This document shows positions 24,020-54,097 of a stretch of 64,000 nucleotides of DNA, piece by piece. The notes beneath the pieces were generated by a model. The model was not told the origin of the DNA. It searched no databases and was given only the letters and a program-made list of their open reading frames with translations. The position numbers and the translations under genes were made by a program. The DNA is from Lepidodermella squamata (taxonomy: Eukaryota; Animalia; Gastrotricha), in the NCBI GenBank assembly GCA_047495785.1, contig JBLDXI010000024.1:1302001-1366000 (forward strand). Direction: 5' to 3'. Every line of letters starts with the position of its first letter. The first letter of the stretch is position 1.

Positions 24020-24178
24020 ATGTCTTTCTAACGCCAATTTTTCTAGGTGATTTTTTCAAATTAATAGATTTGAAACGTAATTAAATTTAGTTAAAAGAAA
24101 AAAAAATTTAAAATTTTAAAATTTGTATACAAACATAATTAAAGCATTTATGTCGAATTTGCACTTCGACGGCCTGTA

Positions 24179-24380: not shown

Positions 24381-24493
24381 GAAAAATAATTGGAAATGAA
24401 TTGCAGTTTCGTGCTTTGTGATAAGTATAAGTCCAATAGCATCGACATAAAGCACGCGATCATTAGTCTAATACCAGTGTACTTTTCACAACC

Positions 24494-25805: not shown

Positions 25806-26031
25806 ATTTGTCAACCTTGTGGATAGTGGTAGGAATATAAGCACAATCAGTTAGTCAGTGTGGCCAACCCTGTTAGAACCAAATCGAATAATAAATGCCT
25901 GATCGGAGGAATACCGTGTAGTTCACCAAATTCTAACAAAGTGATAGGTGTTAAGGGTGCTTTAAACTTTCTATGAGGCTATGAGTTTTATTTTGTTTGA
26001 TTTCGAAGCTCTCCCCACATTTTGGTAACTA

Positions 26032-26896
26032 CACCTGTTTTCCTTTGCATTTTCAAAATGACAGAAACCAATTTCACAATCACTCTCCGGCACGCGTTCT
26101 TCCTTTTCATCAGCTTCCTTTTCTTCATTTTTTTACTTTTTTAATATAGAGCTTCTGCTTCATTTTTTTCCTCTTTTTCCTCATAATGAAGCAGAAGCTC
26201 TACAGTCAGCTCCTGCTATGCTAAGCATGCTTTCAGCGGAGACAAGGAAAAGTTGCGCGTAGGCGAAACTTGCGTAAAAGCGAATAACTCTTAATAAAGC
26301 TGGGAAGTGCCGGAATTCGATGGTTTTATTACTAAAACGCAATTTTTTCTATTTTTGAGATGATATCAGTGATATTTTTGCGGTTTTTCTTGTCAAAAAC
26401 TACTGAGTACAGGAGCTTCAATGCCATTAGCACCATTTTTTCGGTGATCTCCACACACTGATAGCTCGACATTGGCGCTGTTACTAAACGTAGCCGCATT
26501 AGCGCGCTTCTGGCATTAGCGCGCGCGCACCTACACACGACGCGCACACCGACCAATAAGCGCGCGCGCACAAAATAGAGCGCAGGTTCTCTTTGCAGGT
26601 TGAAAAGGGGAAATTGCGTTATGCAGGTGCACAGTTACATGGTTTCTCAGTATTTGGGACCGCCGAAAAAGCTGCGTGTTAGCGGAACTTGCGCTTTGTC
26701 GAATTTGCGCAATGTCGAGAAAAAACGAGGGCCATCGCGTCGGCGGAGCTTGCGTTATGGTGTGTTGCGTTATAGCGGGGGCTGACTGTATATTAAAAAA
26801 GTAGAAAAATGAAGCTGATGAAAAAGATGAACGCGTGCCGGAGAGTGATTGTGAAATTGGTTTCTGTCATTTTGAAAATGCGAAGGAAAAAAGGTG
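26032..26896. mobile_element. Foldback MITE (host element), TA TSD
   Basis: ~110 bp inverted arms cacc.ttttcctt.gcattttcaaaatgacagaaaccaatttcacaatcactctccggcacgcgttc...; TA at 26030-31 and 26897-98. Confidence 0.88.
26203..26788. mobile_element. Nested Tc1/pogo-type MITE, TA TSD
   Basis: TIRs cagtcagctcctgctat / atagcgggggctgactg flanked by TA; interrupts the right arm of the foldback element. Confidence 0.85.
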
Positions 26897-27076
26897 TATT
26901 GATGGTATTTAATAAATAATAACGCAAATTAATCGATAAAACCATGAACTATTTATGATAGAGAACATCGCGAGAACATCGGAAAATGCAAGATTGCCAA
27001 CAATAACGATAATTGTTCAGTTTACCAATAGCTATTCTAATAAAAACCGCTCATTATCGAAAACTAACCTCTTTCC

Positions 27077-28379
27077 ATGGTCTTGAATTCGGTTATCACC
27101 GTTCTAAACAACAGGAGCGTCTTCTATGCTGGCGAGGTGATTAATGGCGCTTGTGTAGTGACGGCAAGCGGAGACGCCCAATCCATTCCATCCATCAAAA
27201 TTCGAGTTATGGGGGTTGCGAAAGTTCGCTGGGCCCAGCAGCGCGCGAATAAGAGAGCTTTACATTTCTCAGATTTCCGGAATATCTTTTCAGCAGAGTT
27301 TGACACAGCCGTCCCTGGAGGTTTGATTCAAGCTGGCCAACATAGTTTCCCATTTTCATTTCAGACTCCAGCCAAGTAAGTTTAAAAAAATATCCCGTAC
27401 CTTCAGATGAGCTATCCTATTATGTAGTTTGCCGAGCTCTTTGGAAGGTGACCACGCTTACGTGAGGTATTGGGTTCAGCCTGTTGTCCCGCCGAACTTG
27501 TTCAAATCTTTCTTCCATCCAATGGCTATGTCGATTTTATTCACGCTTGTGCAGCCGATAGAGACAAATATTACCCAGTATAATGTAAGTCTCAATTTGT
27601 TTCTCTGCCGATAAAGATCGATAGATCTTATTTTTGTTTCGTCACAGTTTCGGGTGCATGGAACCGACTCCAAGGAGACTCAGCTCCTATGCTGCAACCT
27701 GGGTCGGCTTAGCATGGAAGCTCATATTGATCGAGCCGCCTTTTGCCCTTTGGAAACCGTGCACGTGACTGCGTCATTCGACAACCAGTCATCACGTGAA
27801 GTAAGACCATACGTCCGCCTTGTCCAATGCATTCGCATGACCGTCCCGGGTGGATATAGCCATTTAGTATCGCGGAATTGGACTCTAGCTTTAGAGAATA
27901 CCACAAACAACATGTTCCCCTATTTGCGGGAAAATGAAAAGTTCCAAATAACAAAGAAGCCATTCCTCCTACCAAACGTTGCCCCGTCCATAACGATTCC
28001 AGGACTGCTAAGTGTGGCCTATCATATCGAAGTTGGAATCTACATCTCAGGGGCCTATGATCTCAAGGTGTATCTTCCCATCGTCGTAGCGACAATGCCT
28101 TATCGTGGTGGCGAGAAGCAGGCTCCTGCTCGAGTGAGTCAACCCGATGCAACTATAATGACGACGTTCAATAGCGGTACGCCGTGGACTGGAATCGGAC
28201 ATTCGAAATCGGCCAATCGGCTCCCTTTGGAATCTCCGATTGAATTTGGCAATGAGGCAGCTAGACCAACATTTCCACCACCGGCTTGCTTCGAAAAGCC
28301 TTTACCTCGCGGTGATGACCATTTTCTGGTTATGCAGAGATTCCTAAATGGCGAGCCACAGTTGAATCATTACAGTTGA
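27077..28379 (+). CDS. Alpha-arrestin copy 5, divergent, 3 exons
   Basis: Arrestin N/C motifs and same intron positions; tail PPPACFE. Confidence 0.9.
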
Positions 28380-32419: not shown

Positions 32420-33628
32420 ATGGTAATTTCTAGAAAAATTCGAGAATTTCGCATTCGATTATCTCTATTTTCGATAATATTCTCATCGACCCTTTCCATA
32501 CTTATCCACATCACCTCGAATTTATTTTCCCCTGGAATATGTGAGCATGCCTCGGGCGAGAAATTAATTTTATATGCGACCACATTTTTTTCTGAAATGT
32601 CGCTTCATGTGTCCTATATGAACGACCACCTTAACGATTGTAATGACCTGAATTGCCGCGGCGTGGCATCGCAATACCGCGAGGCTTGTTTCGATGTCGC
32701 CGACGCGTTAATTTTTTCGCCCGTCTACGAAGATTTCTACACGGCTATGCCAATGTTCGCGCGGAAAAAACGCCGGAAATTAAGGCAGTTATGGATATTC
32801 AAGTCGTTTGAAAGTCCGATGAAGTTAACGCAAATGCTGCCGAGAAATGAAGCGTTCTACGCGTGGGCTAATGGCCGGTTCAATCTATCGCTTACATTTC
32901 GATTTGACTCTGATTTACCGGCCCCTTATCACTACCCGTTTGAATTTGTCCCTGGCTCAAAACCTATCCCGTTTAATTCGGAAATTTTCAAACGAAAATC
33001 GAAACACATCGCTGCTGTTATTTCGAACTGTAAAGATGAGTGGAATAGAATTGATCGGCTTAAAGAGTTGGAAAATTATGGTCTTACCGTTGATATTTAC
33101 GGAAAATGTGGCACGAAAATATGCCCTGGAAAAGTTTCAGGCGAGTGTTACAAACAACTGGAGAAGGATTACTTCTTTTACGCTGGACTTGAAAATACGA
33201 TCTGCCGCGATTATGTCTCAGAAAAATTCTTCGCCCCGCTAGAGTACGACATGGTGAATTTGGTAGCTGGAGGCGGGAATTATTCGTATCTCGGCCCGCC
33301 GAATTCTTTCATAAATTGGCGAGATTTTCACTCTGCCAAGGAATTGGCGGATTATTTGCTAGCTGTAGCTGCTGATGAGGAGAAATACGCTAAATTTTTC
33401 GCGTGGAGAGGCCTTTACGTATTTCCAAGTGGGCCGCCTTATAAATTCGCGTGTAACCTCTGCGAAAAATTAAGGCAGATGCTTCCCGGTACTGAACAGG
33501 CTAGTTTAATCCTCCTCAATATTTTTTTTTATTTTTTTTTCAATTATTTAAAAATACAGGTTATTGTCGACTTGAAGTCTTGGTGGTACGATCAAAGTGG
33601 ATGCGTCACAAATCCTTATAAGATATAA
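32420..33628 (+). CDS. Alpha-1,3/4-fucosyltransferase (GT10)
   Basis: Type II anchor; ADALIF, QLWIF.SFESP, FNLSLTFRFDSD, AVISNC, VDIYGKCG, YFFYAGLENTICRDYVSEKFF, PPNSFI, YAKFFAWR, C.LC; probable 60 nt in-frame intron 33500-33559. Confidence 0.92.
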   Translation: MVISRKIREFRIRLSLFSIIFSSTLSILIHITSNLFSPGICEHASGEKLILYATTFFSEMSLHVSYMNDHLNDCNDLNCRGVASQYREACFDVADALIFSPVYEDFYTAMPMFARKKRRKLRQLWIFKSFESPMKLTQMLPRNEAFYAWANGRFNLSLTFRFDSDLPAPYHYPFEFVPGSKPIPFNSEIFKRKSKHIAAVISNCKDEWNRIDRLKELENYGLTVDIYGKCGTKICPGKVSGECYKQLEKDYFFYAGLENTICRDYVSEKFFAPLEYDMVNLVAGGGNYSYLGPPNSFINWRDFHSAKELADYLLAVAADEEKYAKFFAWRGLYVFPSGPPYKFACNLCEKLRQMLPGTEQASLILLNIFFYFFFNYLKIQVIVDLKSWWYDQSGCVTNPYKI

Positions 33629-33714: not shown

Positions 33715-34727
33715 TCAAGCGTCGACAATGCCTTGACGATCCTCTGATTTGTTTTTGCTGACCATTTTTTTGACCTGCATCGGGAAAGCGTTCACCGCGT
33801 TGCCAACATTACCGTCTGATTTGAAAAATTCCGGAATCGCAAAAATCGAAACGGCCAACCAAGGCAGAGCGCATAGATAAGCCATAATCTGGAATTGACA
33901 ATTATGAAAAAATTTAAAAATTTACTAACAAATAATTACGTATGTAGCCTCAAGGAGGCTGAAATCTGGCTTCTCAATGGGAATGCACAAAACATTGCCC
34001 GTGCAAACTGGGTCGGCCTTGATCATTGCCATCAAGTCCATCTTAGTTTCGACCTCATTAACGCCCTTCATTAAAAAGGTAGCCGCGCCGATCCAAAACG
34101 GAACCATTATGAAACACGTGAACATTGTGATTCTGGTACATCGGCGATCAGTATCGTCAGGGCTGTGATCCTTAATTATCTGCGATGTAACGTTTAGGAT
34201 CAAATTTAGTCTTTGACGAAAAATCGATAAGTATACTTACCTCTTTCCAACATGCGGAGACCAAAAATGCGATAGCGGCAAAAACAACGTAGACGATAGC
34301 CGCTGGTTGGGCAATATCCGTTTGAATAGAAAAATCCAGCGCATTCGATTGTTTTACGTAAATTGAACTTGATCACATAGTTCAATAGATTATTAAATCA
34401 AATTGTTGGAGATAACTCACTCGAAAGGATAGACAGTGTCGATGATAGCCGTTTTCGGGGTGAAAATGAACGAACAATTCCTCGATGGGCACGATGAAAT
34501 GTAGGAGCCTGTAATGTGTGTCAAGCCGAAATACGGATACGTTTCAAGTTGGATGGCAGTCAGAATCGTTACGAAAGGTATAATGAACAGCTGAAATTGA
34601 ATGCATTTTTATCGTAATTCTTTGGGAATTTCTTTGGTTATGTTACCAAGCTGAAAAGTGGTACCAAAACTAGGAAGATGAGTACCAACGCGCCTACAAC
34701 TTCCAGCCAGCTACATTTGTTAGCCAT
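33715..34727 (-). CDS. Uncharacterised 4-TM membrane protein, paralog A, 5 exons
   Basis: MANKCSWLEVVGALVLIFLVLVPLFSL|LFIIPFVTILTA...SCPSRNC...AAIVYVVFAAIAFLVSACWKE|...ITMFTCFIMVPFWIGAATFL...|IMAYLCALPWLAVSIFAIP...GIVDA*; frame conserved in paralog B. Confidence 0.75.
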
Positions 34728-35440: not shown

Positions 35441-36454
35441 TCAAGCATTGACAATGCCTTGACGATCCTCTGATTTGCTTTTGGCGAAAAAGTGTTTGAC
35501 CTGCATAGGGAAAGCATTCACAGCGTTGCCAACATTTCCGTCTGATTTGAAAAATTCCGGGATCGCAAATATCGAAACGGCCAACCAAGGCAGAGCGCAC
35601 AAATAAGCCATAATCTAAGAGTGAAAATAATAGTAAAATTGCGAAAATCACTGAAAATTATTTACGTATGTAGCATCAAGGAAGCTGAAATCTGGCTGTT
35701 CGACGGGAAAGCATAAAACGCTGCCCGTGCAAACTGGGTCGCTCTTAATCATGGCCATCAAGTCCATCTTAGTTTCGACCTCATTAGCGCCCTTCATCAA
35801 AAAGGTAGCCGCGCCGATCCAAAAAGGAACCATTAAGAAACACGTGAACATCGTGATTCTGGCTCGGCGTCGATCAGAATCGCCCGAGGTGTGATCCCTA
35901 ATGACCTGATAGCGTTTATGATCAAATTTAGCCATCTTTTATGTTTGACAAAATATAGATAGGTATACCTCTTTCCAACATGATGAGACCAAAAATGCGA
36001 TGGCGGCAAAAACAACGTAGACTATAGCCGCTGGTTGGGCAATGTCTGTTTGAATGGAAACGTCCGGCGCGTCTGTTTGTTTTACGTAAATAGAACTTGA
36101 ACGCAAAATTCAATAGAATTCATTTATTATTATTATATATTTGAGACAACTCACTCGAAAGGATACACACTGTCGACGGCAACCGTTTTTTGCCTAAACG
36201 AACAATTCCTCGATTGGCACGACGCGACGTAGGATCCTGTATAGTGTGCCAAGCCGAAATAGGGATACGTTTGTATATGGATGACAGTCAAAATGGTGGC
36301 GAAAGGTATGATGAACAACTGGAATTTATTGCATTTATTGTAAGCATTTATTGAAAATGTCTTTGGTTGTTACCAGAAAGAAAAGCGGTACAAAAATTAG
36401 AAAGATGAACATTATGACGCCCACAACCTCCAGCCAGCCGCATTTGTTAGCCAT
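35441..36454 (-). CDS. Uncharacterised 4-TM membrane protein, paralog B, 5 exons
   Basis: High similarity to 33715-34727, including ~210 bp of upstream sequence. Confidence 0.75.
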
Positions 36455-36709: not shown

Positions 36710-37045
36710 ATGAATCAATTCGCGTATCCTTCCAAGGCTATTCTTATTCACCTTGTCGCGTCCAGAAACAAAAACTGGGGTATGATGAATCAGGGGATGC
36801 TGCCGGAGATCATTCATCAACAAATGGCGACGCCGAAACCTGTTCGCCCCACATGGGACATCGACCCTTATCTCTGGAAAAGCCCCATTGGTGAAGAAAT
36901 TGTTGTTCGAAACTCCTCAACAGGATTCATTGTTTGGCAGCTTTTCTCGCCAAAATCGCTGGCTGATTTGACGCCAATAAATTCACCAAATTCCGAAAAT
37001 GATCTGAAAGTTTTCGAATCTAAAATAGACGAAGGTCACCAATAA
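36710..37045 (+). CDS. Possible small hypothetical protein
   Basis: 111 aa ATG ORF with coding-like composition; no recognisable family. Confidence 0.3.
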   Translation: MNQFAYPSKAILIHLVASRNKNWGMMNQGMLPEIIHQQMATPKPVRPTWDIDPYLWKSPIGEEIVVRNSSTGFIVWQLFSPKSLADLTPINSPNSENDLKVFESKIDEGHQ

Positions 37046-37256: not shown

Positions 37257-37717
37257 CTAATATCGATACAGGCCATTGGTAGCCGCCGCGCCCTTGGCGC
37301 CCAAATAGTTGGGCGCAATCACGGACATTCGCGGCTGTTGGAACATGCCCTGAACGCCGGAGATAACAGGCTTGATGCCTTCGAAATCGTTAGGATTTTT
37401 CGCGAATAGGTGCTGATTAGGCGGCAACATTTGCTGCCGTTCCGACGAAAACGATCCGACTGAAGATCGCCCGCCAACGCCGGTTTGTTGCTGGCGAATA
37501 TCCATGTCGTCTTTCTCGGACGGGCTAACAGCCGATTTGTTCGCAGAAGCTCGTCTGAAATTAGGATTCGCTATAAATTTGCTATAGTGGGAATGATTAC
37601 ATACCTCATAGCCATGACAATGTTGACCATTATGGCTACTACGAGGAAAAAAATCGCTGCCATAATCGGGCAGACGATTGATAGGACCACAACATTAGTC
37701 GAGCTAGTTTCAGCCAT
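37257..37717 (-). CDS. Small single-pass membrane protein 1 (2 exons)
   Basis: MAETSSTNVVVLSIVCPIMAAIFFLVVAIMVNIVMAMR|RASANK...NGLYRY*; phase-2 intron 37604-37555. Confidence 0.72.
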
Positions 37718-38115
37718 GATTGCACTGTTTGACTTTGAAAAAAACTTGGTTTGCCTGCAGGTGGGAAAACCTCCTTGGTGTGCACTATACCAAATGCGAC
37801 CGCCTACAGGGAAATGCGACCAGGGAAACAAAAAATAAAAAAAGCTTTCAAGGTCTATTGATTTTTCACAATTGCTAGTCATAACATGCTCGACACTGCT
37901 CAATAATTTAGATCCCTTTCAATGACGTCCTGACTGGAGGCGGAAATCCTTGGAAAACATGAAGAAACAGAAAAACAAGATCTGGAGAATTTCCATCGCC
38001 TCGTCCTTATTTATTTTCGCAATTTTCAATTTTTAAATATAAGGGGTAAAGTTAAACTGTCGAGGATTCAGTTGAATATTCGCTATTTTTGCGGCGAAAT
38101 TTCAATCATCTTGAT

Positions 38116-38492
38116 TCAGTGGCGACTTTGGCCGAGCTCTTTAGCTTCGTCGTCGTCACTTTTGCGGCGATTAACGGCTTTGTCGAAATTTTGATCCTTG
38201 TACAGGTGAGCATTTTTATGCTGATCGAGCGAAGCCGAAGATCGAACTCGTTTGTAGTCGCCACAGCCGATTTGCTCACGGCGCTCGTCGGCCGAATTCG
38301 GTCGCACTTTTGACGGCGATTTCCTACAAAATTCAGGAATAATTAGAAAAAAAGATTCCCAATAACAAATTTCAATTCAAACCAAATCAGGAGAATAATC
38401 TTGATGACTACAATGAGGACTAGAAGCAGAATGGCCGCAATCACCGGGCTGACAACCGCGAGAACAAACGGGTTAGAAGAGCTATTTGCCAT
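38116..38492 (-). CDS. Small single-pass membrane protein 2 (2 exons)
   Basis: MANSSSNPFVLAVVSPVIAAILLLVLIVVIKIILLIW|KSPSKVRPNSADERREQIGCGDYKRVRS...SRH*. Confidence 0.72.
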
Positions 38493-39100
38493 ATTTTTGT
38501 TGGCTTTTGTTACCACAAGTATTACCTGCTAATGAAAAATCGTGATGATAGAATTTTTTGAAATCTTTCGTGGGCTTGGAATCAATCAATAATTCAGCTT
38601 TTAATTCATTAATTATTCAATTTTCTTCGATTTTTTTCGATTTTTTTCACGGAGCGACCGAAGTTCAGCACACCCTGAAACTTGATAATCATGAAATCTA
38701 AAATGAAATTTTCAAAGCAAGGAAAAGAAATTCAAAGGCGGGAGTTCAAGTGGAAAAAACTCATAGTTTGAAGGGAGAAGATAGGTAGCGACTCAGCATT
38801 CAGCTATCAGCTTCGTCGATGTGCATACGAAATGGCCAATGTCCAGCTGCGAAAATGTTCTGCTCAACATAAACTTTTCCAAGCTTGGCCTTGAATCCAG
38901 TGTCAATCGATAGACAGAGTTTGATATTTTTGATTAATTTTTGGTATCCATAGAAGCAAGAAAAAAATAAAAACGGGTGCAATCTTTCATACAACATCTA
39001 TTTTTAATAATTTTTAATAAATTTAATAAATCATTACGGAAATACCAGATGACTATTTCTCGGTTTATATAAGAAAAACGGGGTTCCGATAACTTAGTTA

Positions 39101-39579
39101 CAGTGAAACCCCGATTTGGCGTCCTTTTATTTTCCGTTGTAACGGTGACAGGTACTCGCGATCACGGGATCATGACCGACGACCCGACTTGTATTTAGGC
39201 AAAAACAGTTCCCGACAAACTAAGAAACTAGGCGGTTTTATTATTGCTAAGGCTAGGCTAATTCATGATATCCAAAACGGAAGATGATAAGTTCATGTAA
39301 AATTGGGCTTTTTATAGCCAGTTTGTGAAACAGGTGGAGCGCGCGCTGCCAAGCAGCACGCGCCGAACATATGTTGCTAGAAATAGTAAACAGGGCGGTG
39401 GCGTCACCGCCACATCCGTCTACGGGAAATCCGGGTATGCAAAAGATAAGGGGATGAAAAATCTTCATTTTTCCCCGCAGCATAGCATTGCATGTAAATT
39501 GACCCGGATTATCCGTCTTTTCGGATTTCCCGCCCGATTTTTTGGCCGGCCCGTAGATGGCCAAATCGGGGTTTCACTG
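39101..39579. mobile_element. Tc1/pogo-type MITE, TA TSD
   Basis: Perfect 20 bp TIR cagtgaaaccccgatttggc / gccaaatcggggtttcactg with TA on both sides. Confidence 0.9.
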
Positions 39580-39651
39580 TAATTTTTTACCTTGAAAATG
39601 GTTATTAGTGAAGTGCAAGAGTCCTAAAATTAGTAAAAACCCCAAGCTCGA

Positions 39652-39749
39652 CCTAGCCCTAACCTTAACCTTGATCTCTAATCAAACCCTAACCTTAACC
39701 TGAAACTGAACCCTGAAACCTAACCCTAACCCCTAACCTCTGATAACCT
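39652..39749. repeat. Degenerate telomere-like (CCCTAA/CCTTAA)n tract
   Basis: ccctaaccttaacc...accctaaccttaacc...cctaaccctaacccctaacc. Confidence 0.7.
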
Positions 39750-39960
39750 CAATTCCCAACCATCGTTTTGCTAAAAAACCAAAATTCAATAAAAAAATAT
39801 GTACGATAGAACACTTCGAATTAAGTTTTTATGTTCACATTTTTAAATAATTCAGCTATCGTTTCCATAGCAGTCTGTCGGGTTCCATAATAGGTCGACG
39901 AAACTTTTGTTTCTTTCCAAGTTCATCTCATTTTATTTTGAAGAGTAAATGCTGGGTTGA

Positions 39961-40485
39961 TCAGTAGACAAAGTTTATGTGACGTTTTGTAAGTTTTTCG
40001 CAAAATTTGTTCATGTCTTGCGTGGCCGTGGCATTGCTATTTCGCAGTACGGAACTCATAGTCTCACTCGCCTTCCCACCGATCGGTTTATTTGCCTCCG
40101 GTTTCTTGTAGATGGCTCCGCTTCGAAGGTCCTCAAGCTCATGCGATTGTTGAACTTGTTGAGGCGTCGGGGTCACGAATCGAACCAAATTATCGGCTGG
40201 TGGTGGCGGCCTTGGGACGAATCCGATGGGCTGCAAAGGCTCGGGCTTGTCGACAGATCGCACCTGGGAGAGCTGAATTTTCGTTGAGGATTTTCGGCTG
40301 TTCTCGTCTTCGACCACCCGAGGACGGCGCCTATAAGGAAAAAAGCCGTTATGAGGTTGATTAATTATGAAAAATCCGAACCTTAAAACCATGATAACTT
40401 TCACGATAATCACGACGACCACCGTCAACAAGGCGACGACGACAACGCATATTGCCCCTATAGCTCCCGGTGCCCAATCAGACAT
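39961..40485 (-). CDS. Small single-pass membrane protein 3
   Basis: MSDWAPGAIGAICVVVVALLTVVVVIIVKVIMVLR|RRPRVVEDENSRK...PRPPPP...; in-frame intron directly after the TM. Confidence 0.72.
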   Translation of the reverse strand: MSDWAPGAIGAICVVVVALLTVVVVIIVKVIMVLRFGFFIINQPHNGFFPYRRRPRVVEDENSRKSSTKIQLSQVRSVDKPEPLQPIGFVPRPPPPADNLVRFVTPTPQQVQQSHELEDLRSGAIYKKPEANKPIGGKASETMSSVLRNSNATATQDMNKFCEKLTKRHINFVY

Positions 40486-40914
40486 GCTAGTTTTATCGTT
40501 TAATAGTCTCTCCTTCAAAGGTTTTGATGAAAAAATCAAAATCGGTGCCTGAAATTTTGCGAAAAGTTACGCTAAATAATTTAACATGCTCAGTTTTTAG
40601 CGCTCTGGGCTGTCATCCAGCCGTTGTTGAGTATGATGACAAGGACATTTTTCTGCGACAAATCAGCGGCACAGCTCAGCTTATGACGTAGATTGAAGCT
40701 TTATATTGAAAACATATCTATAGAATTTAGAATTAAGGTTGCGTGGCTAAGTTCGATCCTCAGCCAAATGTATCCTGATTAGTTTCCGGCAAGAAATATT
40801 CTGCGGAAAATCAAGAAATCAAACAACCTAAATTTGAGGCTATAGTTTCCCGAATTAGGATTTTCGCAATCCCGCCCAGCCGATATAGGTCTACTGCTTA
40901 ATATCACTTTTACA

Positions 40915-41050
40915 GAGCTGATATCGATTCCAAGATTCAAAAAATCACTGATTTTTCCCATATCAGGAGCCTTGGAAGCCAGGCATTGATAGCATTCCTA
41001 TCCAGCTAACGGTACAAAGTTGCAAAGATAAAAATCCCGGGATCAAAGGA
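40915..41050 (+). repeat. Dispersed repeat family, copy 3 of 3
   Basis: gatatcgattcc...aatcactgatttttccc.tatc...cagctaacggtac..agttgc matches 1075-1210. Confidence 0.55.
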
Positions 41051-41324
41051 ATGATTCGAAATCGGAAAAATCGACGAGATGCGTATAGGACCAATTATTC
41101 ATAGGAACAAATATTCAGAAGCCATCGAATCCCTGTTTCCTTAAATTTACGTTCGAAACGGCGCAAAAGACTGCCTTTTTGCACTAAAATTCACCCATTT
41201 TTTGATCTTTTAATATCGAATATAACAATAACAACTATGTCAGCGAACAAGTTCACCGTTACATGCCACTGATTTATACAAGAACACCTATGAAAGTCCT
41301 TATATCGCGAATTCTGCCTTGATT

Positions 41325-41730
41325 TCAGTTGTAAACATCGTGCGACTCTGTGCTGTAAGTCTTCCGAAGCACATCGGCATTCATGGATCGGTCGCTTCCG
41401 GAACCGCTGCCGTGGCCCATCTTAGCGTATGTGACGTCACGAGGGTACCGGCCACTCTTCGTCATTTCGCCTTTGAGAACACCCGAGGCGATCCGTTTGC
41501 CATCGCCTACTGCCATTTGCTCGCGGCGGTCCATAGGGCTAACTTTCGACGGCGAACCAGCCATTTCCCTGGAAAAAAAACCGAAATTGAGTGATATAAT
41601 AAAAATACTGGCTATATTGGTCATACTTGAAGGCAAATGCAACTTTGACAGCTATGAGTATCATAGCCGCGAAGACCGCAATCATCAATACGGCAATAAC
41701 GGCCACAATCGCAGCGGAAAAATCACCCAT
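41325..41730 (-). CDS. Small single-pass membrane protein 4 (2 exons)
   Basis: MGDFSAAIVAVIAVLMIAVFAAMILIAVKVAFAFK|EMAGSPSKVSPMDRREQMAVGDGKRIAS...VTYAKM...DVYN*. Confidence 0.72.
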
Positions 41731-41972
41731 TTTTTTCGACAATTTCTAAAAAAAATACAAGAAATAAATATTGCGAGTACGAAAACCTTATTATTGTGGG
41801 TGTTGAATCATTTATTAACTAGCCAGTTACGAGCTAAAACGCTTCCTACGTTACCTTTTAGACATCGAGGCATTCGAACTTTTAGTTGCCAGGCAGCAAG
41901 ATCAAAACAGTCAGATTTTTTAGATTTTAATATTTAAAAAAATTGAACTTGATAAAAGACGAAGAAAAGGAG

Positions 41973-42505
41973 TCAAAAATGGGTGTTGTTTGAAAACATC
42001 ATATTTCCAGGCATTGGCTGGGCGAAAGCTTTCTTGCCGAATTGTTGGGCCGGCGAGGCAAATCCTGGGAATCCTTTCCCACCACCCATCTGCAGCAGGT
42101 TCACGCCCTGGCCCGATGGCATTGAAGCTGAACAGCGAGTTTTGCCAACAAATTCCCAGGCCGCATTAGCGCCTTGGTTGAAGTTATTTTTCGCTGGAAC
42201 ATTGTACAGCGTTGGGTTCATTATCGGGCTTTGATTGTTCGAATTTTTCGGAATATCGAGGTGGAAATCGCTTTCCTTGCCGGGATTTTTGTCAGATTTA
42301 TCTTTTTCATCTTTCGCCTCTTCCTCAGCAATTTTGCCACGTTGATCCCTGAGAACAAAATTGTTTACAATAAGAAATAAATTGATGTAATTAACCCTCA
42401 CCTCCATGTTGTAATAGCTTTGTAGATGATGAAAACGAACATGAAGAAACATACTGCTATCAACGTTCCAATGACAATTGTAACTGCCAACGAGATGTCG
42501 CTCAT
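41973..42505 (-). CDS. Small single-pass membrane protein 5 (2 exons)
   Basis: MSDISLAVTIVIGTLIAVCFFMFVFIIYKAITTWR|DQRGKIAEEE...NNTHF*; donor gtgagg, acceptor ctcag. Confidence 0.72.
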
Positions 42506-42750
42506 TTTTCACGAATTTCGGCTAAAAAAATCTCAACCTATGCGAGTTGCGAAACCCCTTGAAAAAAACTTATCGATTTGCGAATAAAAAATTCATCAAT
42601 ATTTTTCATTTCCTCAACGACGTTACTAAATTATTAAAATTTGCTCTTTAATCTTGGTCCATTTATTTTTTACAAAAAAAACAAATACGAAAATGAAATT
42701 GAGATAAAATTAAGAAAAGTCAGAAATTCCCGCCGTTTTTCCAGCTGATT

Positions 42751-43125
42751 TCAGCGTTCAGCGCTAGTAGCAGCAAAATGGGCATCATCGCCTGGGTAGC
42801 TTGTTTTTCGATAGCTGTCTTTGACCAGCGACATGACAGACTCGCGTCGGTGAACACCTTTAGTAGGCGTGTTGGGCGCGTAAATTCTTGCAATGGTCTG
42901 GCGCCGTAAATCGCCGACTGCATACTGCTCTTCGCGAGAGTCGCCAGATTCGCCAGATATAGCCGAACTGCACTTATTTTTCGAGGCACTTGCCGGGAAA
43001 ACCTTCGCCTTGGAGTATTTTCGAATAACTCGGACGATTTCCACGAGAATTACCGCCATACCGATGAGTACGGCTGCCATGATGACACATAGGACTGAGA
43101 TAATAATCACTGACCAATCGACCAT
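42751..43125 (-). CDS. Small single-pass membrane protein 6 (single exon)
   Basis: MVDWSVIIISVLCVIMAAVLIGMAVILVEIVRVIRK...SREEQYAVGDLRRQTI...*. Confidence 0.72.
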   Translation of the reverse strand: MVDWSVIIISVLCVIMAAVLIGMAVILVEIVRVIRKYSKAKVFPASASKNKCSSAISGESGDSREEQYAVGDLRRQTIARIYAPNTPTKGVHRRESVMSLVKDSYRKTSYPGDDAHFAATSAER

Positions 43126-44016: not shown

Positions 44017-45285
44017 ATGGCGATATTTCGGGGCGAGAAGAAGTGCTTCTTAGCTATTGTTTGCTGCTCAATTATTGCTCTTCTAGTCAGCATATCGAAC
44101 TTGATCCAGAATCGTGGATCCTACCTCCACCAAAATGGAGACCAACCAGCGAGAAACGAAACGAAATTTCAGCCATTGACGAGCAGCATAGCACCTGTAT
44201 TAGCGCAGCAAGAATTCGAGAAAAATTTGACCTTGGAAAGAATTTTCGAAAATCGCAGGCTCCAGGTCAAAAAAGTTTGCGCTCACCACTTTGGAATTGT
44301 CAACCGTGACCGGATTCTTCCGATGTTCGAGTACCAACGAGGCGATCCTTATCATTTCATTCTGCTGGACGAGAGGCATAAAATTATGTATTGCGCGTGA
44401 GTTTAATTTTTTCGAATTTTAAATTTAAATTTTCAAATTTTTTTCAGAATTCCAAAGGTCGCATCAACGACTTGGCGCCAATTTTTCGTTCAACTTGGAA
44501 CCGGATCCACTGAAATTGGGGTTAATATCGAGCATTGGAACTCGACCTCGCCTTACTTGAAGCCTCTATCTGCCTATACGTCCGATGGGTTCTATCGTCT
44601 TCTCGGCCGGTTGAACTCCTACAAGCGAATTCTCTGGGTTCGGGACCCTCTTCAACGCCTTCTGTCAGCCTGGCGAAGCAAATTTCAAGAGAAAAATGAC
44701 TATTACTGGAAGGTATTAAGATTTCACCAGCTTAATGAATCCAGCTTATTTTCTCGTTTTTTTCGACAGAATTTTGGTCGCCAAATTCTGAAGCGCTTTC
44801 ACAAAAGACTGCTTAACGACGAAGTCATGCAAGCTGGAGGGCCAATTCCCCTGATCGATTTTTTCAGATTCCTAGGAGATGCTAGCACAATCAACGACGT
44901 CCATTGGGAAAAATATTACAAGTAAAATTAAAATTGATAAAATTAAAAATTAATTATTTCAATTGTTCCTTTAGGTTGTGCCTTCCTTGCCATATGAATT
45001 ACGATTACATAGGTAGGCTGGATTTTACCTGTTTTTAATTGCTTCTAATAATGCGATTTAGGTCATTTAGAAGGCGGGGAAGAGGAAGCAAATTATGTTA
45101 TACGGCAAATAACGAAGCAAGAAACAATTTTAATCCCGCGAAAGCCAGACAAGGCCGGATCTCAGGATGCGCTGCGTAAAAGGGCTGCTTCTCAACTTCA
45201 GGATATTCCGAGGCCTCTGTTGAAACTTGTTCTTGATAGATACATCGTCGACTACGCCATGTTCGGCTACCAAACACCGCGATGA
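44017..45285 (+). CDS. Carbohydrate sulfotransferase, tandem copy 1 (5 exons)
   Basis: TM anchor; YCA|IPKVASTTWR; WVRDPLQRLLSAW; DVHW; CLPC.MNYDYIG|HLE; DYAMFGY. Confidence 0.9.
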
Positions 45286-46105
45286 TTTGATAATTTGATA
45301 ATTTATTAGTATGAAATAAAACTGCTGAGATATCGCGGATACAACAATTTTGAACATTTTGGGTTAACCGGTGAATATTTTAAATCGCCAAAAATCAGGT
45401 ATAATTTGTAATATCGCCAAAATGTGCAGACATATCGGAGATCATCCTAATTTCTCGCCTAAAATATATCCGAAAATCTCAAAAGTAACACTGATTTTTT
45501 GAACAGAAGATCATTTAGCGGAACAAAATCTGCATGTTGCGGAACCTAATTTTAAATCTGTTCTCGATTTTTTTTACGAAATTAAAGCAATATGAATTCT
45601 ATAGGGAAGAATCTGCCTGATGCAAAATTGTACGCTGAATTTAAAAATGATTTATTTTAAATAATTATTTGCCGATCAATCATGGCATCATTGATAGGTT
45701 TGAAAAGGTTATTAACAACTCCAATTTGGCGCCGCTAACAGGCAAATTAGGTTCCGCCAAAAGGAAGACCCCTTTTTGAACATTGAAAACATGTTTTTTG
45801 TCCAAAGTGACCCCGCAGAAATTTTTCGATGGCTATAACAATAGACATGACCCAATAGCACTTGTAAGGCTTGTACGTTTGAATACCACGTGGCGATTCT
45901 GGCCGGAGCGCATTATTAATTAAATACTCATTGTCTCGGTAGGCGAGTGTTTAAGCGATTTAAATATCGGAATTCGATTCGTCTCTTAGACAAAATTCAA
46001 ATATTAGACGCTAAGATTTCCTTTTCTAATAAATAATGAATGGGAGAAATACCGCGCTTATTGTTTATTTTTTGAGGATGAGCAGTTTTTTTTGGCAAAA
46101 TTACA

Positions 46106-47367
46106 ATGTCGCGATTAAGTACAGAGAGACGGTGCTTCTGCTTCGTGGCAGTCGCGACAACAGTCATAACTTTCATGACAGCCATTACCTTCATGCCAAA
46201 CCATTACCACTTGGTAAAATCAGTCTATGTCGAAGAAATATGGCTGCAAGAAGATGCCGAAAAGTCGACGACTCAATCGCGATCTAGGAATGAGGAAGGC
46301 GATGATTTGTTTTCAAATCCTGCAATGGAAGCGTTGTTCAAAAAGCGCCGAGATTCATTGATCACGAAATGCGCTGGAACCTTTGGCCTCAAGCCAAATG
46401 ACAATGGTATGGAGATCATTACGTACCGGTATACGAGTGCCTTTAGACACATTCTGGTCGATGAAAGGCACAAAATACTATATTGCGCGTAATTTATTTC
46501 ATATTTTTGATGAATTTTAATTCATTTTTTTATTTAGGATACCGAAGATAGCGACGACGACGTGGCGGTTGTTTTTCGTCCAGCTTGGCGAGAATAAAAC
46601 TGAAATAGATTTTGATATCGAGCCATGGAACGCAACTTGGCCTCACTTGAGGCCGCTGAGCTCTTTTAACCTCGAAAAATTCCAAGTTATTTGGAATGAA
46701 TTGAAGAAATATCGGAAAATCATTTGGGTGCGAAATCCTCTCCAGCGATTGATATCGGCCTGGCGCAGTAAATTCGTCGAGTACAATCATTATTATTGGG
46801 ATGTGAGCATTTATATAAGTTATTAATTTATCTTTAATTTATCTTTAATTTATCTTTAATGACCTGAAACAGATAATGGGACGCGGTATATTGGAGAGAT
46901 ATCACGCGAATGATACGAATTACGCCAAGGTAACAGAACAAGGTGGGCCTTTACCAATTCGCGATTTTTTCCGGTATTTGGGCGAACAGCAGCACATTTA
47001 CGACGTTCATTGGTCAAATTATCACAAGTAAAAAAAAACAAAAAAATAATGAAATTTTATTGAATTTTTATTGAGCAGATTATGTCTTCCATGCAACATT
47101 CGTTACGATTACATCGGACATTTGGAAAGCGGCAAAGTAGAGGCCGATTATGTTATCAAGAAACTGACTCGGCAAGACAGAATATTGATTCCGAGATCGG
47201 ATTCCGAAGGCAGTCGTTACAAAACGAGAACCGCAGCTGAAATTAGAGTTCTTAGTGATGACATCATTTTTCCGGCGCTTAAATCGTACGCCATAGACTA
47301 TAACTTATTTGGCTACGATTATCCGAAAGGATTTTTGGCATATTTGGATGAGAAGAATAAAGCGTGA
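46106..47367 (+). CDS. Carbohydrate sulfotransferase, tandem copy 2 (4 exons)
   Basis: IPKIATTTWR; WVRNPLQRLISAW; CLPCNIRYDYIGHLE; DYNLFGY. Confidence 0.9.
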
Positions 47368-48941
47368 TTCACTTATGGAAAATAAGGCGGTTTAGGTTCA
47401 AAATTCAAATTTTTTAATTCCCGGCCTCGCTTCGACGAACCAATCTCGACACCTTGCGCTAGTTTATACCAATGCCGAACCATTAGGCCCAGCGTCTTAC
47501 CTCGGTTTTCTTCTTATGGCCAAACACTTGAGGAAGCATTTACCGCTGAGTGTTTGTTCCCGAGGCCTGATTCGCTGCTTTAGCGCGTTGTTCAGATGCT
47601 GTACCTTTTCAAGCGCAAGCAAAGCTGCTCTTGTGGCTACTTGTGGCCCAAATTTCTCACAGCATTTTCTTACGTTCTACGCCTGGTTATTTTCTTCTTT
47701 CTTCTGATTTATTTCGATTTTTCACTGGCGATCATTTCCCCCTCTATACCCTTTTATTATATAAATCCCTTTCCACGAGTTAGGTCATCGCGTTTACAGA
47801 GCCAGAGTTGACCTGGGTCAGGCCGGGCCGTATTTAGTCGATGTCTTCTCGTTCATTTAGAGGCAAGAGTAGTCAATGAATTAGGCGGTCGCATTCATTG
47901 GGCATTGAATTCACATCTAATTTACTGCCGTCAGAAAGTTGACAAGGCATCAATGATCCACTGGAAAGCCAGCCATAAAAATAGGTCACAAAAAGCCATG
48001 AAAATGTGGGGCAGCGCGGTCACCTTTATCGAAACTGAGAAAATCGCAAAATAGAGCTCACTAAAATTACCCGGCCAGGAAGAAAAAATGCTCTTCACAT
48101 GCTGAAAAATCGACCGTTAACAAGTGAAAAGTGGGGCGTGGTGAATGTGTCCGATTTTACAGGCCTCGGTGATGCGGTAATGCGCCATGGTGAGGAAAGT
48201 ACGGCGAAACTTGTTGATAAGTGACTGCAGATCCCTAAAATTCACTAGGCAGCAGCCGTGTTGTTCATTTATGCGGTGCATTGATCGGTATTTCTACTTA
48301 TGATTTGATTACCCTCATCGATCCGGAGTATTGCGGCCTAAAACTCTGAAAAGTATAGAAACCTTGCCGTGTCGCCACCTATCAAATCGTGAACTCTGAT
48401 AAGGGAATAAGAAGTGGTTGTAATATGCTGCCATCAACCCTGAGCACAAGATATCCATAAAATAGAAGGAAAACCAGTGTAATGGAACGAAATCGACTCG
48501 CGGGGATGCCAATCATCGACCTCACGGACTTGCACGAGGGATGGGCGTGCAATAAAGCAATCAATTATTATTGGGCTACTGTTATTACCTGTGCGATGAG
48601 TGCTGATTGCTACTATTCGTAAATGCGCGCTGGGTCTTCACATGCATGAATTCACGATTTATCATGAGCAATAGTACCCTAGCTTTTGACTTTCGCACGG
48701 GGATTTCATTTTTTTGCTCAATCTAACAACAACGCGCATTTTCTCAACGCCTCGTTTTTGCATTCCGCTTATATAACTTAGAAAGCTCTCATCAATTATT
48801 CACTGGAAAGCGGTGAAAGAAAAAACTATCGATGTGTTTGATTTGTGTGCTTATTATTAGGTATGTAGTAGTAGAGTCTCTTGTAAGCTTCAGTACGAAA
48901 GTGGGCTGGAATGCTCATAATTGGCAGCACGGCGAGGCATA

Positions 48942-50262
48942 ATGACTTTCCTCGACTTTGAAAAGCGATGTTTCCTACTTGTAACTCTGACAGCATCAGT
49001 GATCGGCTTGTATATCGCCGTAGCCTTACTACAATTTCCATCGAACAACATTCTTTACGTTCAGCAAAACTGGCATGAACACACGTTCATTGTCAGCGTA
49101 GGCAAGGATGATGCCGGAAAGTCAAACGGAACCATCAATCGAATCAAGGCATTGGCTGGAACCACCCAACGGACGGTCGCAATAACCAGGCAATTCTTAA
49201 ATGAATCAGCAGCGGATACGAATGAAACGTCTGGCGATAAACAGCTTGAAGATATGTTTGTGGAGCGGCGAAAATGGAAGCTGAAAGCGTGCCAAATGTA
49301 CTTTGGGTTATCACCGCGAAATAATTACGAGCTGTCAATTAAGGGCTATCGCAGGACGGTAGCATTTCGTCATCTGATGGTCGATGATAAACACAAAATC
49401 ATTTTCTGCGCGTAAATATTTTCTCTTCCCATAATTCTTGTTTTTATGGATTTTTTCTAGGATTCCTAAAGTAGCATCAACGACATGGCGACTATTTTTT
49501 CTACGACTCGGTCGAGGCGTGAAGAATCTTGTTGAGGATGTGGAGGACTGGAACTCCACCTGGCCTTATTTGAGATCTCTGTCTACTTACTTGAGCGAAG
49601 ACTACGACAAGTTTTGGACCCGTATTAAAACTTACAAAAAGGTTGTGTGGGTTCGCGATCCTCTTCAGCGGCTTCTTTCAGCTTGGCGGAGTAAATTTCA
49701 AACCAAAAATGCTTTCTACTGGAAGGTTGATCGAAAATAATTCATGTAACATAAAGTTGACATTATTTTTTTCAGGCATTCGGGAGGTCGATATTGGAGA
49801 GATATCACAAAGGTGACAAAAATTATACGGCTTTGAAAGCTGCTGGTGGCCCTGTTCCTTTGAAAGACTTTTTCCAATATCTGAAGGACCAAAGGACGAT
49901 AACGGATGTTCACTGGGAAAAATATTACAAGTATTATTTTGAAGTTAACATTAAATTGCTTTCAAATTCAAATTGAGTTCAGGCTGTGTCTTCCTTGTCA
50001 TCTCAATTACGACTACATCGGTCATTTAGATGGAGGTATTAAGGAGGCCAACTATGTGCTGGAAAAACTTACTGGCCAGAACGAAATTCTGCTTCCACAC
50101 AGCTTGGAAACGCGCGAAAAACTACTGAATCAAACAGTGGCTCAGCTGAGCACCGTTCCTAAAGATTTAATATTTTCAGTCCTCAAAAACTACAACATTG
50201 ATTACGCATTATTTGGCTATTCGTTCCCTCAGAAGTTTGAAGATTTTTTTCGAACGTCGTGA
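48942..50262 (+). CDS. Carbohydrate sulfotransferase, tandem copy 3 (4 exons)
   Basis: IPKVASTTWR; WVRDPLQRLLSAW; DVHW; DYALFGY. Confidence 0.9.
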
Positions 50263-50475
50263 TATATCTTGTTGCCAAGTAAAATTGATCGAGCTTCTTA
50301 TCGAGCGTGAAGGTGGTGGTTACAACTAAAAAATTCGCATGCGCAGGACGTGCGATCAATAACACGCACCACGCATCAGCACAATAACCTGACCTATTTT
50401 TTTTTACAAAGGTCTCGACAAAAAACACGAACCCACTGCTACGTAGATGAATGAAAGCGCGGCAGCTGGAAGTTA

Positions 50476-51700
50476 ATGGCCTTTAATTTTTTTGCTTTCG
50501 AACAGAGATGCTTCTTGTTATCCGTAGTCCTTGGAACGTCGATGATTTTCTTGATGATCGCCCTTTTTGAGGGCGTAGCGAGGACAACATCTGTGAGTGC
50601 TCCAACACTGATAATCCTATGGAGAGATAACGTCAAGGAGAAAAGGCGAGTTCCCCTCATCCAAATGGTCAATGAGACGTATGAAACCGAACCCAAGACC
50701 ACTACTGCAGTAGCCACCACAAAAACTGCGTCGAAAGATGAATTGTTGGAAGTTACATTTGCCCTGAGACGGCAACAAGTCAAAAACGCATGTGCAAGGC
50801 ACATTCCTTACCAGAACAATGGTGCATCACCACTGTCTATCATAAGACTGAACGTAAACTTGTTCGCTCAGCGGCACATTTTAATCGACGATGAGCACAA
50901 AGTTTTGTTCTGCTCGTAAGTGTAATTAAAGCACAAACCAACCGTGATAATTCTGATGTCGTTTGCAGAATTCCAAAAGTCGGATCGACAACTTGGCGGC
51001 AGTTTTTCGTGCGACTCGGCAAAAACCAGCCTGATATTGAACCTGATGTTCAAGAAGACTGGAATTCAACAGCGCCCTACCTCAAACCGTTGTACATGTT
51101 TTTCAAAGAGAACCAAGACTACCTGTGGACCCGAATAAGCTCGTATAAGAAGGTCATATGGGTTCGTGACCCTTGGCAGCGGCTGCTGTCAGCTTGGCGT
51201 AACAAATTTTTCGAGGGAAATGGTTACTATTGGAAGACATACGGCATACCTATCGCTAAAACATACGGCGACGAACGGCTCAATCAAACTGTTAGGGAAA
51301 TTGGTGGGCCGTTGCCACTTGAATATTTCCTTAAATACCTCACTGGTCCCAAGCCGATTACTGACGTGCATTGGGAACCATTTTACAAGTAATAGAATTG
51401 ACGTCTTTGAACAGCATATTTGAACTAATTATTTTATGTAGGATGTGCCTCCCTTGCCTCATAGATTATGACTACATCGGCCACCTTGAAGGTGGAGAGG
51501 ATGAAGCTAATTACGTGATTAAGCGAACGACAAAGCAAGACAACGTGCTGATGAAACACAAATCTTTAGAGCTGGTAACGCAAGCGCATGAATCGACAAG
51601 GCAACAGGTTGCGAATATCAATTCAGTGATGCTGCATACAGCTGTTGAAAAGTACAGGATCGATTTTGAGATGTTTGGCTATGATCCACCGGTATTTTAG
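50476..51700 (+). CDS. Carbohydrate sulfotransferase, tandem copy 4 (3 exons)
   Basis: IPKVGSTTWR; WVRDPWQRLLSAW; DVHWEP; DFEMFGY. Confidence 0.9.
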
Positions 51701-52061
51701 GCTTCTTGAGTTGTTATACTAATTTGATTCTCATTGACTATGACCCGGTTTTTAGCAACTTCTCAATTTTTATCTTTCGAGATTACAATTTATTAAATCT
51801 CTATACATTTTTCATAGTTCATAACGACGTATGAATAAAACATTCTTTGGACTCAAGGCTTGTCTAGTTGCTAAGTTGACGGATATAACGGGTTTCTCTC
51901 AAGCAAAAGCCAGTAGCATGGAATGAATAATAAATAACTAGCATATATTGGAATATCGATAGCTGGTTTTTTCGAACAATGCCACAAGGGTAGCTCATAC
52001 GCGTCAATATGAGTACAACGCTACTTTCCAAGAATGCACTGGACATTTTTTCTCGCCAGTT

Positions 52062-53494
52062 ATGAGCTCACATTGCCATGAGAGGGCAACTTACCTGCTG
52101 ATTCTCTTTAGCGCTTTCAGTTTGCTGGTATTTATCCTAAATGTTGACTCGGACAGAATTTCGCCCAAATCCAAAGCCTTGCATATTTTTAACGAGACCA
52201 GGGCTCCAGTAACTTCTGTTGTCAATGCAACGCTCGAAAAAAGGTTCGCTGGTCGGCGAGAGGCCGTTCGAAAAGCCTGCTCGAAGTACTACGACCTAAA
52301 TCGGCTCTCATCCTTGGAAGCTTTCAAACGAACCTTCGCCTTTCGGCACATCCTAATCGATGAGCGGCATAAAATATTATTCTGCGCGTAATTATTTCCC
52401 AGAGCAATTTTTGGGTGAACCTCTGAAATTCTCTATCGCAGGATTCCGAAAGTTGCTTCGACAACATGGCGAAGATTCTTTGTTAGGCTGGGTTCAAATA
52501 ACAAGTATTTCAATGAGAGTCTCGAAGATTGGAACGCTACTTGGCCCTACGTGAAGCCTCTTGCGGCCATCGTGGCTGAGGGAAACTTCACTTGGGCATG
52601 GGACAAAATTCAGAACTTCACAAGGGTGATGTGGGTGAGGAATCCTATGGATCGTTTGTTGTCCGCTTGGCGAAACAAATTTCAGCTTCACAGCGATTAC
52701 TATTGGAATGTAAGTTGCTGCTTACAACTTTAGTAAAGCAAACAACCCAGACGAAAATCAGTAGACCGAGAGCTCAGTAGATCGTACGTAGATCCAAAAG
52801 GCAAAATATCCGTCCAAAATTGTTGTTTTTCCGACCTATTGTCGATCTATTAAACTGGATCTACGGGCATCGATCCTGTGTAGGTCCTAATTTTACCATT
52901 CGATCTACGTAGGGTCGAACCCTTACGATCTACCCCAGTGTCAAATTTAGATCGAGCCATGGTCTACTTTTTTTCGACTGGGAACTAATTATGAAGGTTT
53001 TCGCAGGTTTTTGGAAAAATCATTACTTATAAATATCATCAGAATGATAGCAGCTACGCTGACCGCCTCAAAGTAGGGGGTCCTGTCGATCTCTTAGACT
53101 TTTTTCGTTACATCACTGGCCTTGGTACGCAAGTGGACGTCCATTGGGAAAAATTTCATAAGTTGGTAACCCTGCTCTGCGAATCAAAAGCAGTTTCAAA
53201 ATATCCTATTTTTAAAGGATGTGTCTTCCTTGCCATCTAAATTACAACTACATTGGTCGCCTTGAAGGCGGCTCCGTGGAGGCTAATTACCTAATTCGCC
53301 GGCTAACAGGGCAAAACGACATTCTTCTCCCTCACGATAATGGAGAGATGTCGGAAAATGTACGCAAAGCTGCTGAGTTACAATTGAAATCAATCCCTAA
53401 GTCACTTCTCAAAAAGGTTTACCGCCGTTACAACACAGATTTCAACATTTTCGGCTATAAATTACCAGTGTTTGTTTTCGAACCATGGAAATGA
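52062..53494 (+). CDS. Carbohydrate sulfotransferase, tandem copy 5 (4 exons)
   Basis: IPKVASTTWR; WVRNPMDRLLSAW; DVHW; DFNIFGY. Confidence 0.9.
52746..52982. mobile_element. MITE with CCCAG termini (CACTA/EnSpm-like), 2 bp AA TSD, intronic
   Basis: cccagacgaaaatcagtagacc / ggtctactttttttcgactggg; internal gtagatc/gatctac repeats. Confidence 0.75.
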
Positions 53495-54097
53495 ATGCGC
53501 GAAGGTGTGAAAAACTGACGATGTTTACGAAATGAAGTCGTGACTAAATTGGAACAAACTTTGTCTTTGACTTCCTATCTACAATTCTACGTCTAATCAC
53601 TCATCGGAAACAGCATGTTTGTTTCAAGCCTTAGCACTTAGCAGCAGGTATCATTTTCAAGCTTCAGTCTAAAAACATCTGGATATTTCTTTTCCGAAGT
53701 AAAAAAAACAGTCTAGGTAAACTTCTTGCATCCTGCACGCTGAAAGCAAAAAAACAAGATGCAACGTACAATTCAGATTATCAACCGACAGGTTAGATCA
53801 TCATAACATGAAAACAAGTTCTTTCAAGTGTGGAGGAGACAATTTATCTCTCCTGCATGTTTTGTGTCACCCTTAACGAGATCATCTGTTGACCTAGAGA
53901 AACGTAACAACTCAGACATTTCTACACTCGTTATTTTATTCAAAAAATCCTAAATTATTACTAAACTAAGGTTAGTTGATCAAAAGTAAGAGAAATAATA
54001 AGTTGGACAAACCAGCCGTCAGTTTCAAAAGAACAAAATCTCGGCACAATGAGGTTACAAACTACAAAACGTCTGAGGCTACTAGTTTCATTCAGAT

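Follow-up and report, generated by a model that had tools for sequence, protein, structure and literature searches.

The locus raises the question of what kind of protein is encoded by six minus-strand genes (A to F) at positions 37257-43125 of a 64,000-nucleotide stretch of Lepidodermella squamata DNA (contig JBLDXI010000024.1, positions 1,302,001 to 1,366,000; hereafter the window), and of whether these genes have relatives anywhere. An earlier sequence-only reading had taken them for a lineage-specific array of single-pass membrane microproteins resembling signalling adaptors or channel subunits. We find that, by their sequences, the six genes belong to a family of ten that has so far been found only in this genome. 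Its members share a single helix behind a very short N-terminus and, in seven of the ten, a short motif within a polar tail. It is hypothesized, tentatively, that the products are membrane-tethered docking or regulatory subunits that would act through this motif. Short introns and a GC content of ~41% characterize the window, which is animal DNA.

The ten-member family and its genes

The whole genome (121.2 Mb in 151 contigs) was searched in six frames with profiles of the array genes. With the tails of A, C, E and F as profile, two further genes were found, G (E 2e-6) and H (E 1e-3). The profile of the six helix exons found the same two (H, 5e-10; G, 9e-8) and nothing else below E 0.2, so that the helix is specific to the family and not generic. 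Iterated profile searching added I and J and then converged, for a total of ten members. The four members outside the array all have a phase-2 intron at the same place; nine of the ten thereby carry a low-GC, phase-2 GT..AG intron of 48-59 nt at one position, and precise intron loss would be the simplest account of gene A, which has none. Shuffling tests gave z-scores of 4-17 for most pairs of members. The helix exon of B is related to those of G (z 4.8) and C (z 3.6), and the tails of B and D show no likeness to any other member in these tests; as judged from sequence, B and D keep the family anchor and carry different tails. The sequence-only reading had held that sequence diverged while architecture was kept. 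That view suits the tails of B and D but is too strong for A, C, E and F, since the helix exons of the array align without gaps and these four tails share a clear motif.

All six array genes were recovered on the minus strand within the interval first proposed. Their products are 105-159 amino acids long, for which the term small proteins is preferable to the original label of microproteins. Five genes (B-F) do have, as had been claimed, a phase-2 intron right after the membrane helix, at one codon position, where it interrupts the basic (or Trp) codon at the end of the helix. These introns are 50-59 nt in length, all GT..AG with a pyrimidine tract, and their GC content is 24-32%, versus 38-57% in the exons. 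In A, B, C, E, G and H the ATG is preceded by an in-frame stop at a distance of 6-39 nt, which indicates that the very short N-terminus is real and that no exon has been missed. A poly(A)-type hexamer follows the stop of every gene at a distance of 24-101 nt.

Several lines of evidence indicate that the six predicted genes are very probably real. Using a codon-usage table taken from recognisable genes of the same window, the annotated frame had the top score of the six frames in 15 of 15 exon pieces (array, G and H). By our calculation, the chance of an open second exon of 122-124 codons, as in B and D, is ~5e-4 at this base composition. Pairs of paralogues are saturated at synonymous sites (pS 0.65-0.95), and the reading frames are nonetheless intact in all ten members, with helix-exon non-synonymous differences of 0.22-0.32 within the E-H group. 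Since this saturation makes dN/dS between paralogues not computable, pN and pS are given instead. A DNA search of the genome itself found no second haplotype copy, so allelic dN/dS was not possible either. Saturated synonymous sites, together with the kept frames, intron position and phase, mark the paralogues in our sequence comparisons as old duplicates held by selection. When both strands of the window were scanned for ATG-initiated reading frames with a comparable N-terminal hydrophobic stretch, A-F and one other gene were obtained; the latter, at 36454 on the minus strand, is an unrelated multi-exon gene.

The stop-to-ATG gaps among A, B and C (41973-43125) measure 245 and 242 nt, and a T-rich tract followed by AG lies 15-16 nt before the ATG in B and C and 36 nt before it in E. 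The spacing of A, B and C would fit trans-splice acceptors or operon-like co-transcription.

Helix, orientation and tail

The N-termini of the array products comprise 4-9 residues, none of them basic, which agrees with the ectodomain of under ~10 residues proposed previously and which the upstream stops prevent from being longer. Across the ten members the range is 4-16 residues. Eight of the ten N-terminal flanks lack Lys and Arg, eight are net acidic, and none is net basic; the only basic residues there are one Arg in I and two Lys in J, both of which are still net acidic. No gap interrupts the helix in an alignment of the ten helix exons. A hydrophobic core of ~23 residues is followed by a fixed polar position (K/N/E/R), six more hydrophobic residues and a closing basic residue, the polar position standing six or seven residues before the latter. 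Accordingly, the single membrane segment of ~26-30 residues described earlier is upheld as a single helix, but its length resolves into the core, the polar K/N/E position and the six hydrophobic residues beyond it. One face of the helix is built of conserved small residues: Cys/Gly/Ala/Ser (Cys in 7/10), then Ala four or five positions on, with the Cys followed by Pro in six members. Beyond the helix come three to five basic residues.

For AlphaFold2, gene A was the query and the paralogue pieces made up the alignment. The model contains one helix at residues 4-40 (pLDDT >88) and a tail with pLDDT ~50 and no secondary structure. In the tails, 73-79% of residues are polar or disorder-promoting. 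The basic border and the predicted disorder bear out the stop-transfer and polar, likely disordered tail of the sequence-only reading. Its view that there is no signal peptide also stands, because a cleaved one would be far shorter than the hydrophobic stretch of 23-30 residues and the N-terminus is acidic. For the same reasons the products do not look like secreted peptide or neuropeptide precursors, which would have a cleavable signal peptide, though dibasic flanks occur in C, E, G and H. The long anchor, the positive C-terminal side and the lack of a cleavable signal peptide are those of a type III (N-out, C-in) signal anchor by sequence rules. Under the positive-inside rule, the basic flank of a membrane helix is cytosolic; given the neutral or acidic N-terminal flank and the strongly basic flank after the helix, we infer that the N-terminus is outside and the tail cytosolic. 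N-myristoylation at an MG start was also considered and fits only some members.

Four of the six array tails (A, C, E and F) have in common the motif S-x-K-V-x-P ... RREQxxVGDxx[KR]R-x-S/T, with an aromatic residue 12-20 positions after it. The motif, with one or two residues between [KR]R and S/T, is present in seven of the ten members, and an eighth (I) retains a remnant only. Five members (A, C, E, G and H) have R/K-R-x-S/T sites, of the type used by basic-directed kinases, right behind the VGD block. Dibasic pairs flank the block EQxxVGD[YFG] in four members (C, E, G and H), with RR before it and KR or RR after it. The tails contain one to five Tyr residues that do not align between members, and the sole conserved aromatic column has Phe in F and G.

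Relatives, likenesses and proposed role

Searches beyond this genome used gene A whole and genes B-J exon by exon. Pfam-A and NCBIfam scans of gene A and all exon pieces (Pfam E up to 10) returned only sub-threshold helix noise, namely DNER_C, Vpu, Syndecan and phage holin. A PDB sequence search with gene A and the tail profile gave no match, and a word-index search with gene A and an eight-tail alignment gave none at E up to 10. In line with the suggested check by HMM, a profile was built from six tails and run in a full HMMER pass against 1.84 billion representative proteins; it found no true relative among matches reported at E up to 1e-3, a threshold that an ortholog sharing only a short motif could miss. 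The two matches obtained were repeat artefacts, one a translated repeat (P0001) and the other a bacterial repeat protein with TQQTACGD units (P0002). Metagenomes were scanned twice, first for the tail motif and then for the helix motif, with no confirmed match, and exact look-ups of the gene A product and three neighbouring proteins returned nothing on record. With ten paralogues here and no relative elsewhere, the claim of a lineage-specific family without recognised kin holds as far as these tools reach. Gastrotrichs have one sequenced genome by published account (PMC11660948), so their lineage-specific genes are essentially unexplored, and the absence of relatives is to be read against this sparse sampling.

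In the ESM-Atlas, the recognition score of gene A was low, and the look-alikes (Stannin, C1orf185, FAM163, TMEM52, poxvirus A36R, LIME1, TMIE, Opalin and SCIMP) all scored below 0.9. For both reasons these proteins show a design class and not kinship. Direct comparison with LAT/PAG, KCNE, FXYD, Stannin and syndecan was likewise negative, and no clear assignment to a known family emerged. The adaptors LAT, PAG/Cbp, NTAL, LIME1 and SCIMP resemble the family in their short outer N-terminus without a signal peptide, single helix and long disordered cytosolic tail; the tails of vertebrate immune adaptors work through short motifs, and those of the family likewise bear a motif. LIME1 and SCIMP are among the look-alikes at 0.83-0.84. 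However, LAT and PAG have a Cys-x-x-Cys for palmitoylation just inside the membrane, whereas none of the ten members has a Cys within 10 residues past the basic border. LAT and PAG also have several conserved tyrosine motifs, versus none here, where the conserved RREQxxVGD is followed by Ser/Thr and not Tyr. The Pfam models of LAT, PAG, LIME1 and SCIMP had no match in gene A or any exon piece at E up to 10.

Stannin (PF09049/PF09050/PF09051) is the nearest named look-alike (0.88, 145/256 features), which we regard as a lead only. At ~88 residues, it has an N-terminal helix followed by a cytosolic part, as in the family layout, but this part is a folded helix in Stannin as opposed to the predicted disordered tail here, and the Stannin models had no match at E up to 10. 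Syndecan (PF01034) also has one helix bearing a small-residue face, and its short tail likewise has an aromatic PDZ-type end, but its large outer domain with glycosaminoglycan sites and its EFYA terminus are absent from the family. Its sub-threshold match involved only the helix in exon 1 of B (E 1; 9.8 bits, cut-off 25.2). The sequence AIYKKPEANKP of gene D recalls the syndecan tail and is likewise a lead only.

The role that we favour, though at somewhat less than even odds, is that of membrane-tethered docking or regulatory subunits. The short N-terminus would lie outside and the disordered tail in the cytoplasm, where the RREQ-x-x-V-G-D motif may dock a cytosolic partner, beside a putative phosphorylation site for a basic-directed kinase. 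The conserved helix face could pack against another membrane helix, either its own copy or a partner's. B and D, with the same anchor and different tails, would serve different partners. Several points weigh against this proposal. B and D lack the motif, and F and I have it in degenerate form only; the orientation comes from sequence rules; and the tail alignments are short, so that estimates of selection on the tails are weak. In addition, these searches found no ortholog in other species, and exact look-ups and word searches did not find the products in the public protein collections queried, which may omit the records of this genome.

A role as helix-driven accessory subunits, like KCNE, FXYD proteins such as phospholemman, or the regulins, is unlikely. 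In such proteins the helix would bind and tune a channel, pump or receptor and the tail would only modulate this, for example by phosphorylation. The earlier comparison to LAT/PAG- or KCNE-type design can be retained for the bitopic class, which charge asymmetry, AlphaFold2 and ESM-Atlas support, but not for the hallmarks of the named proteins, which are absent. KCNE and FXYD proteins are likewise small and single-pass, their helix being conserved and their cytosolic tail short. Conservation in the present family is highest in the helix exon (67% identity between F and G, pN 0.22, versus 39% in the tails); this exon is family-specific genome-wide, its small-residue face is conserved and its interfacial Lys is fixed. 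The basic-kinase-type tail sites also bring to mind the phosphorylation sites of phospholemman and phospholamban. On the other hand, no Pfam match to ISK_Channel (KCNE, PF02060), FXYD (PF02038) or any regulin was found. The outer segment of 4-16 residues cannot accommodate the glycosylated outer domain of KCNE, which has at least 40, nor does it leave room for the FXYD motif, which lies outside the membrane in FXYD proteins and which no N-terminus in the family contains. In seven members, conservation of the tail motif equals that of the helix, more than a mere modulator would need.

It is improbable that the members are trafficking or sorting proteins whose tail signals, aromatic C-termini among them, would steer the protein or a bound cargo to export, endocytosis or PDZ-type anchoring. 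Aromatic C-terminal ends can be class I/II PDZ ligands or COPII export signals, and six of the ten products end in Tyr or Phe (B, -THF; D, -FVY; F, -YRY; G, -FRY; H, -NFY; I, -VHF). The other four C-termini (A, C, E and J) are at odds with this, however, and Tyr is unusual as the last residue of PDZ ligands. B and H have NPTLY and NPSY in their tails, respectively, but their apparent common motif (MNPxxYN..PAKNxF) was not significant on shuffling (z 0.2).

We consider it slightly less probable again that the locus has no functional protein genes, and that the reading frames are unexpressed, decaying or incidental to a non-coding locus. None of the ten products was found in public protein collections, but the possible omission noted above blunts this point. 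Ten frames intact under synonymous saturation, in-frame codon scores that are best for every piece, an intron kept in position and phase in nine genes and poly(A)-type signals past every stop all speak against it.

The opposite orientation, in which the tail would be outside or lumenal and the conserved block would be cut from an anchored precursor at dibasic sites as a peptide, is very improbable. C reads RR-EQMAVGDG-KR, in the form of a cleavage-plus-amidation site, a similar bracket occurs in E, G and H, and the tail around the block diverges freely, as propeptide spacers do; but the charge asymmetry of the helix flanks predicts the reverse, the hydrophobic stretch is much longer than a cleaved signal peptide would be, A and F have no upstream dibasic site, and the tails have neither cysteine pairs nor an enrichment of glycosylation sites. 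The further idea that convertases release 8-9-residue EQxxVGD[Y/F] peptides from such reversed precursors, as gastrotrich-specific tethered signalling peptides, is equally improbable.

The ten genes form an undescribed family of an ordinary kind. Orphan small single-pass families are common in poorly sampled phyla, and no established view is overturned. The family is well delimited, with one anchor, one tail motif and two members with swapped tails, and could serve for studying the origin and diversification of small membrane-tethered docking proteins. Identification of a partner for RREQxxVGD would define a new membrane-recruitment module.

Coordinates and genomic surroundings

Table 1. Genes, exons, introns and tail motifs of the array, with the other members of the family (positions in the window unless a contig is named)
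Feature	Position	Strand	Description
Members A-F	array in window	-	six genes
Gene A	CDS 43125..42754; with stop 42751..43125	-	single exon, 124 aa; sole intronless member; open reading frame and translation, best codon score in frame
Gene A tail motif	42895..42936	-	REEQYAVGDLRRQT; family alignments
Gene B	CDS 42505..42402 + 42348..41976	-	159 aa
Gene B exon 1	42402..42505	-	104 nt; encodes MSD and helix; in-frame TGA 6 nt upstream of ATG
Gene B intron	42349..42401	-	53 nt, GT..AG, phase 2, GC 26%
Gene B exon 2 + stop	41973..42348	-	124-codon polar tail without RREQ..VGD motif; not significantly like any other tail
Gene C	CDS 41730..41627 + 41568..41328	-	115 aa
Gene C exon 1	41627..41730	-	104 nt
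Gene C intron	41569..41626	-	58 nt, phase 2, GC 29%
Gene C exon 2 + stop	41325..41568	-	80-codon tail
Gene C tail motif	41484..41528	-	RREQMAVGDGKRIAS; alignment
Gene D	CDS 40485..40382 + 40330..39964	-	157 aa
Gene D exon 1	40382..40485	-	104 nt; helix exon similar to A, C, E, H at z 5-8
Gene D intron	40331..40381	-	51 nt, phase 2, GC 31%; if retained, frame open without stop
Gene D exon 2 + stop	39961..40330	-	122-codon Pro-rich tail without motif
Gene E	CDS 38492..38383 + 38323..38119	-	105 aa
Gene E exon 1	38383..38492	-	110 nt
Gene E intron	38324..38382	-	59 nt, phase 2, GC 24%
Gene E exon 2 + stop	38116..38323	-	68-codon tail
Gene E tail motif	38236..38283	-	RREQIGCGDYKRVRSS; alignment
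Gene F	CDS 37717..37605 + 37554..37260	-	136 aa
Gene F exon 1	37605..37717	-	113 nt; protein 67% identical to paralogue G outside window
Gene F intron	37555..37604	-	50 nt, phase 2, GC 32%
Gene F exon 2 + stop	37257..37554	-	98-codon tail
Gene F degenerate tail motif	37452..37496	-	RQQQTGVGGRSSVGS; alignment
Member G	same contig, ~60 kb left of array; G/J locus C24:1278181-1279688	-
Member J	C24:1278181-1279688, ~1.2 kb from G	+	strongly acidic 16-residue N-terminus MTDSEEDEKKELSTAN; variant motif LEPGVGDLDRRYS
Member H	contig C3		outside paralogue
Member I	contig C12		outside paralogue; motif remnant only

Nested short transposable elements occupy 39011-39824, between D and E. One of these has 22-bp inverted ends (cagtgaaaccccgatttggc...) at ~39100 and ~39582 and is split by a 277-bp insert (39138-39414), copies of which occur at 91-98% identity on at least 10 contigs. 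The nested elements sit inside an older dispersed repeat (~73% identity) that includes a degenerate telomere-like CCCTAA/CCTAA run at 39640-39760.

To the left of gene F, a 111-codon ATG-initiated reading frame at 36710-37045 (+), possibly a gene, converges on gene F and ends ~210 nt from the F stop; it has no Pfam match. A small multi-exon membrane-protein gene is present as a tandem duplicate at 33715-34500 and 35441-36454 (-), the last exons of which encode 56 nearly identical amino acids (MAYLCALPWLAVSIFAIPEFFKSDGNVGNAVNAFPMQVK...) with no Pfam match.

The other neighbours have no evident link to the array. They include a cluster of arrestin-domain genes to its left at 9358-28379 (+; Arrestin_N/Arrestin_C, E 1e-8 to 1e-16), a gene at 18346-20736 that by eye may encode a class C receptor (confirmed for the ANF_receptor ligand-binding domain only), and a family-10 fucosyltransferase at 32420-33628. 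To the right of the array, several carbohydrate sulfotransferase-like exons were noted by eye at 44017-56336, where 44557-44922 alone was confirmed (Sulfotransfer_2, E 6.6e-10), and a fatty-acid desaturase-family gene, by eye possibly a sphingolipid desaturase, lies at 56647-57624.

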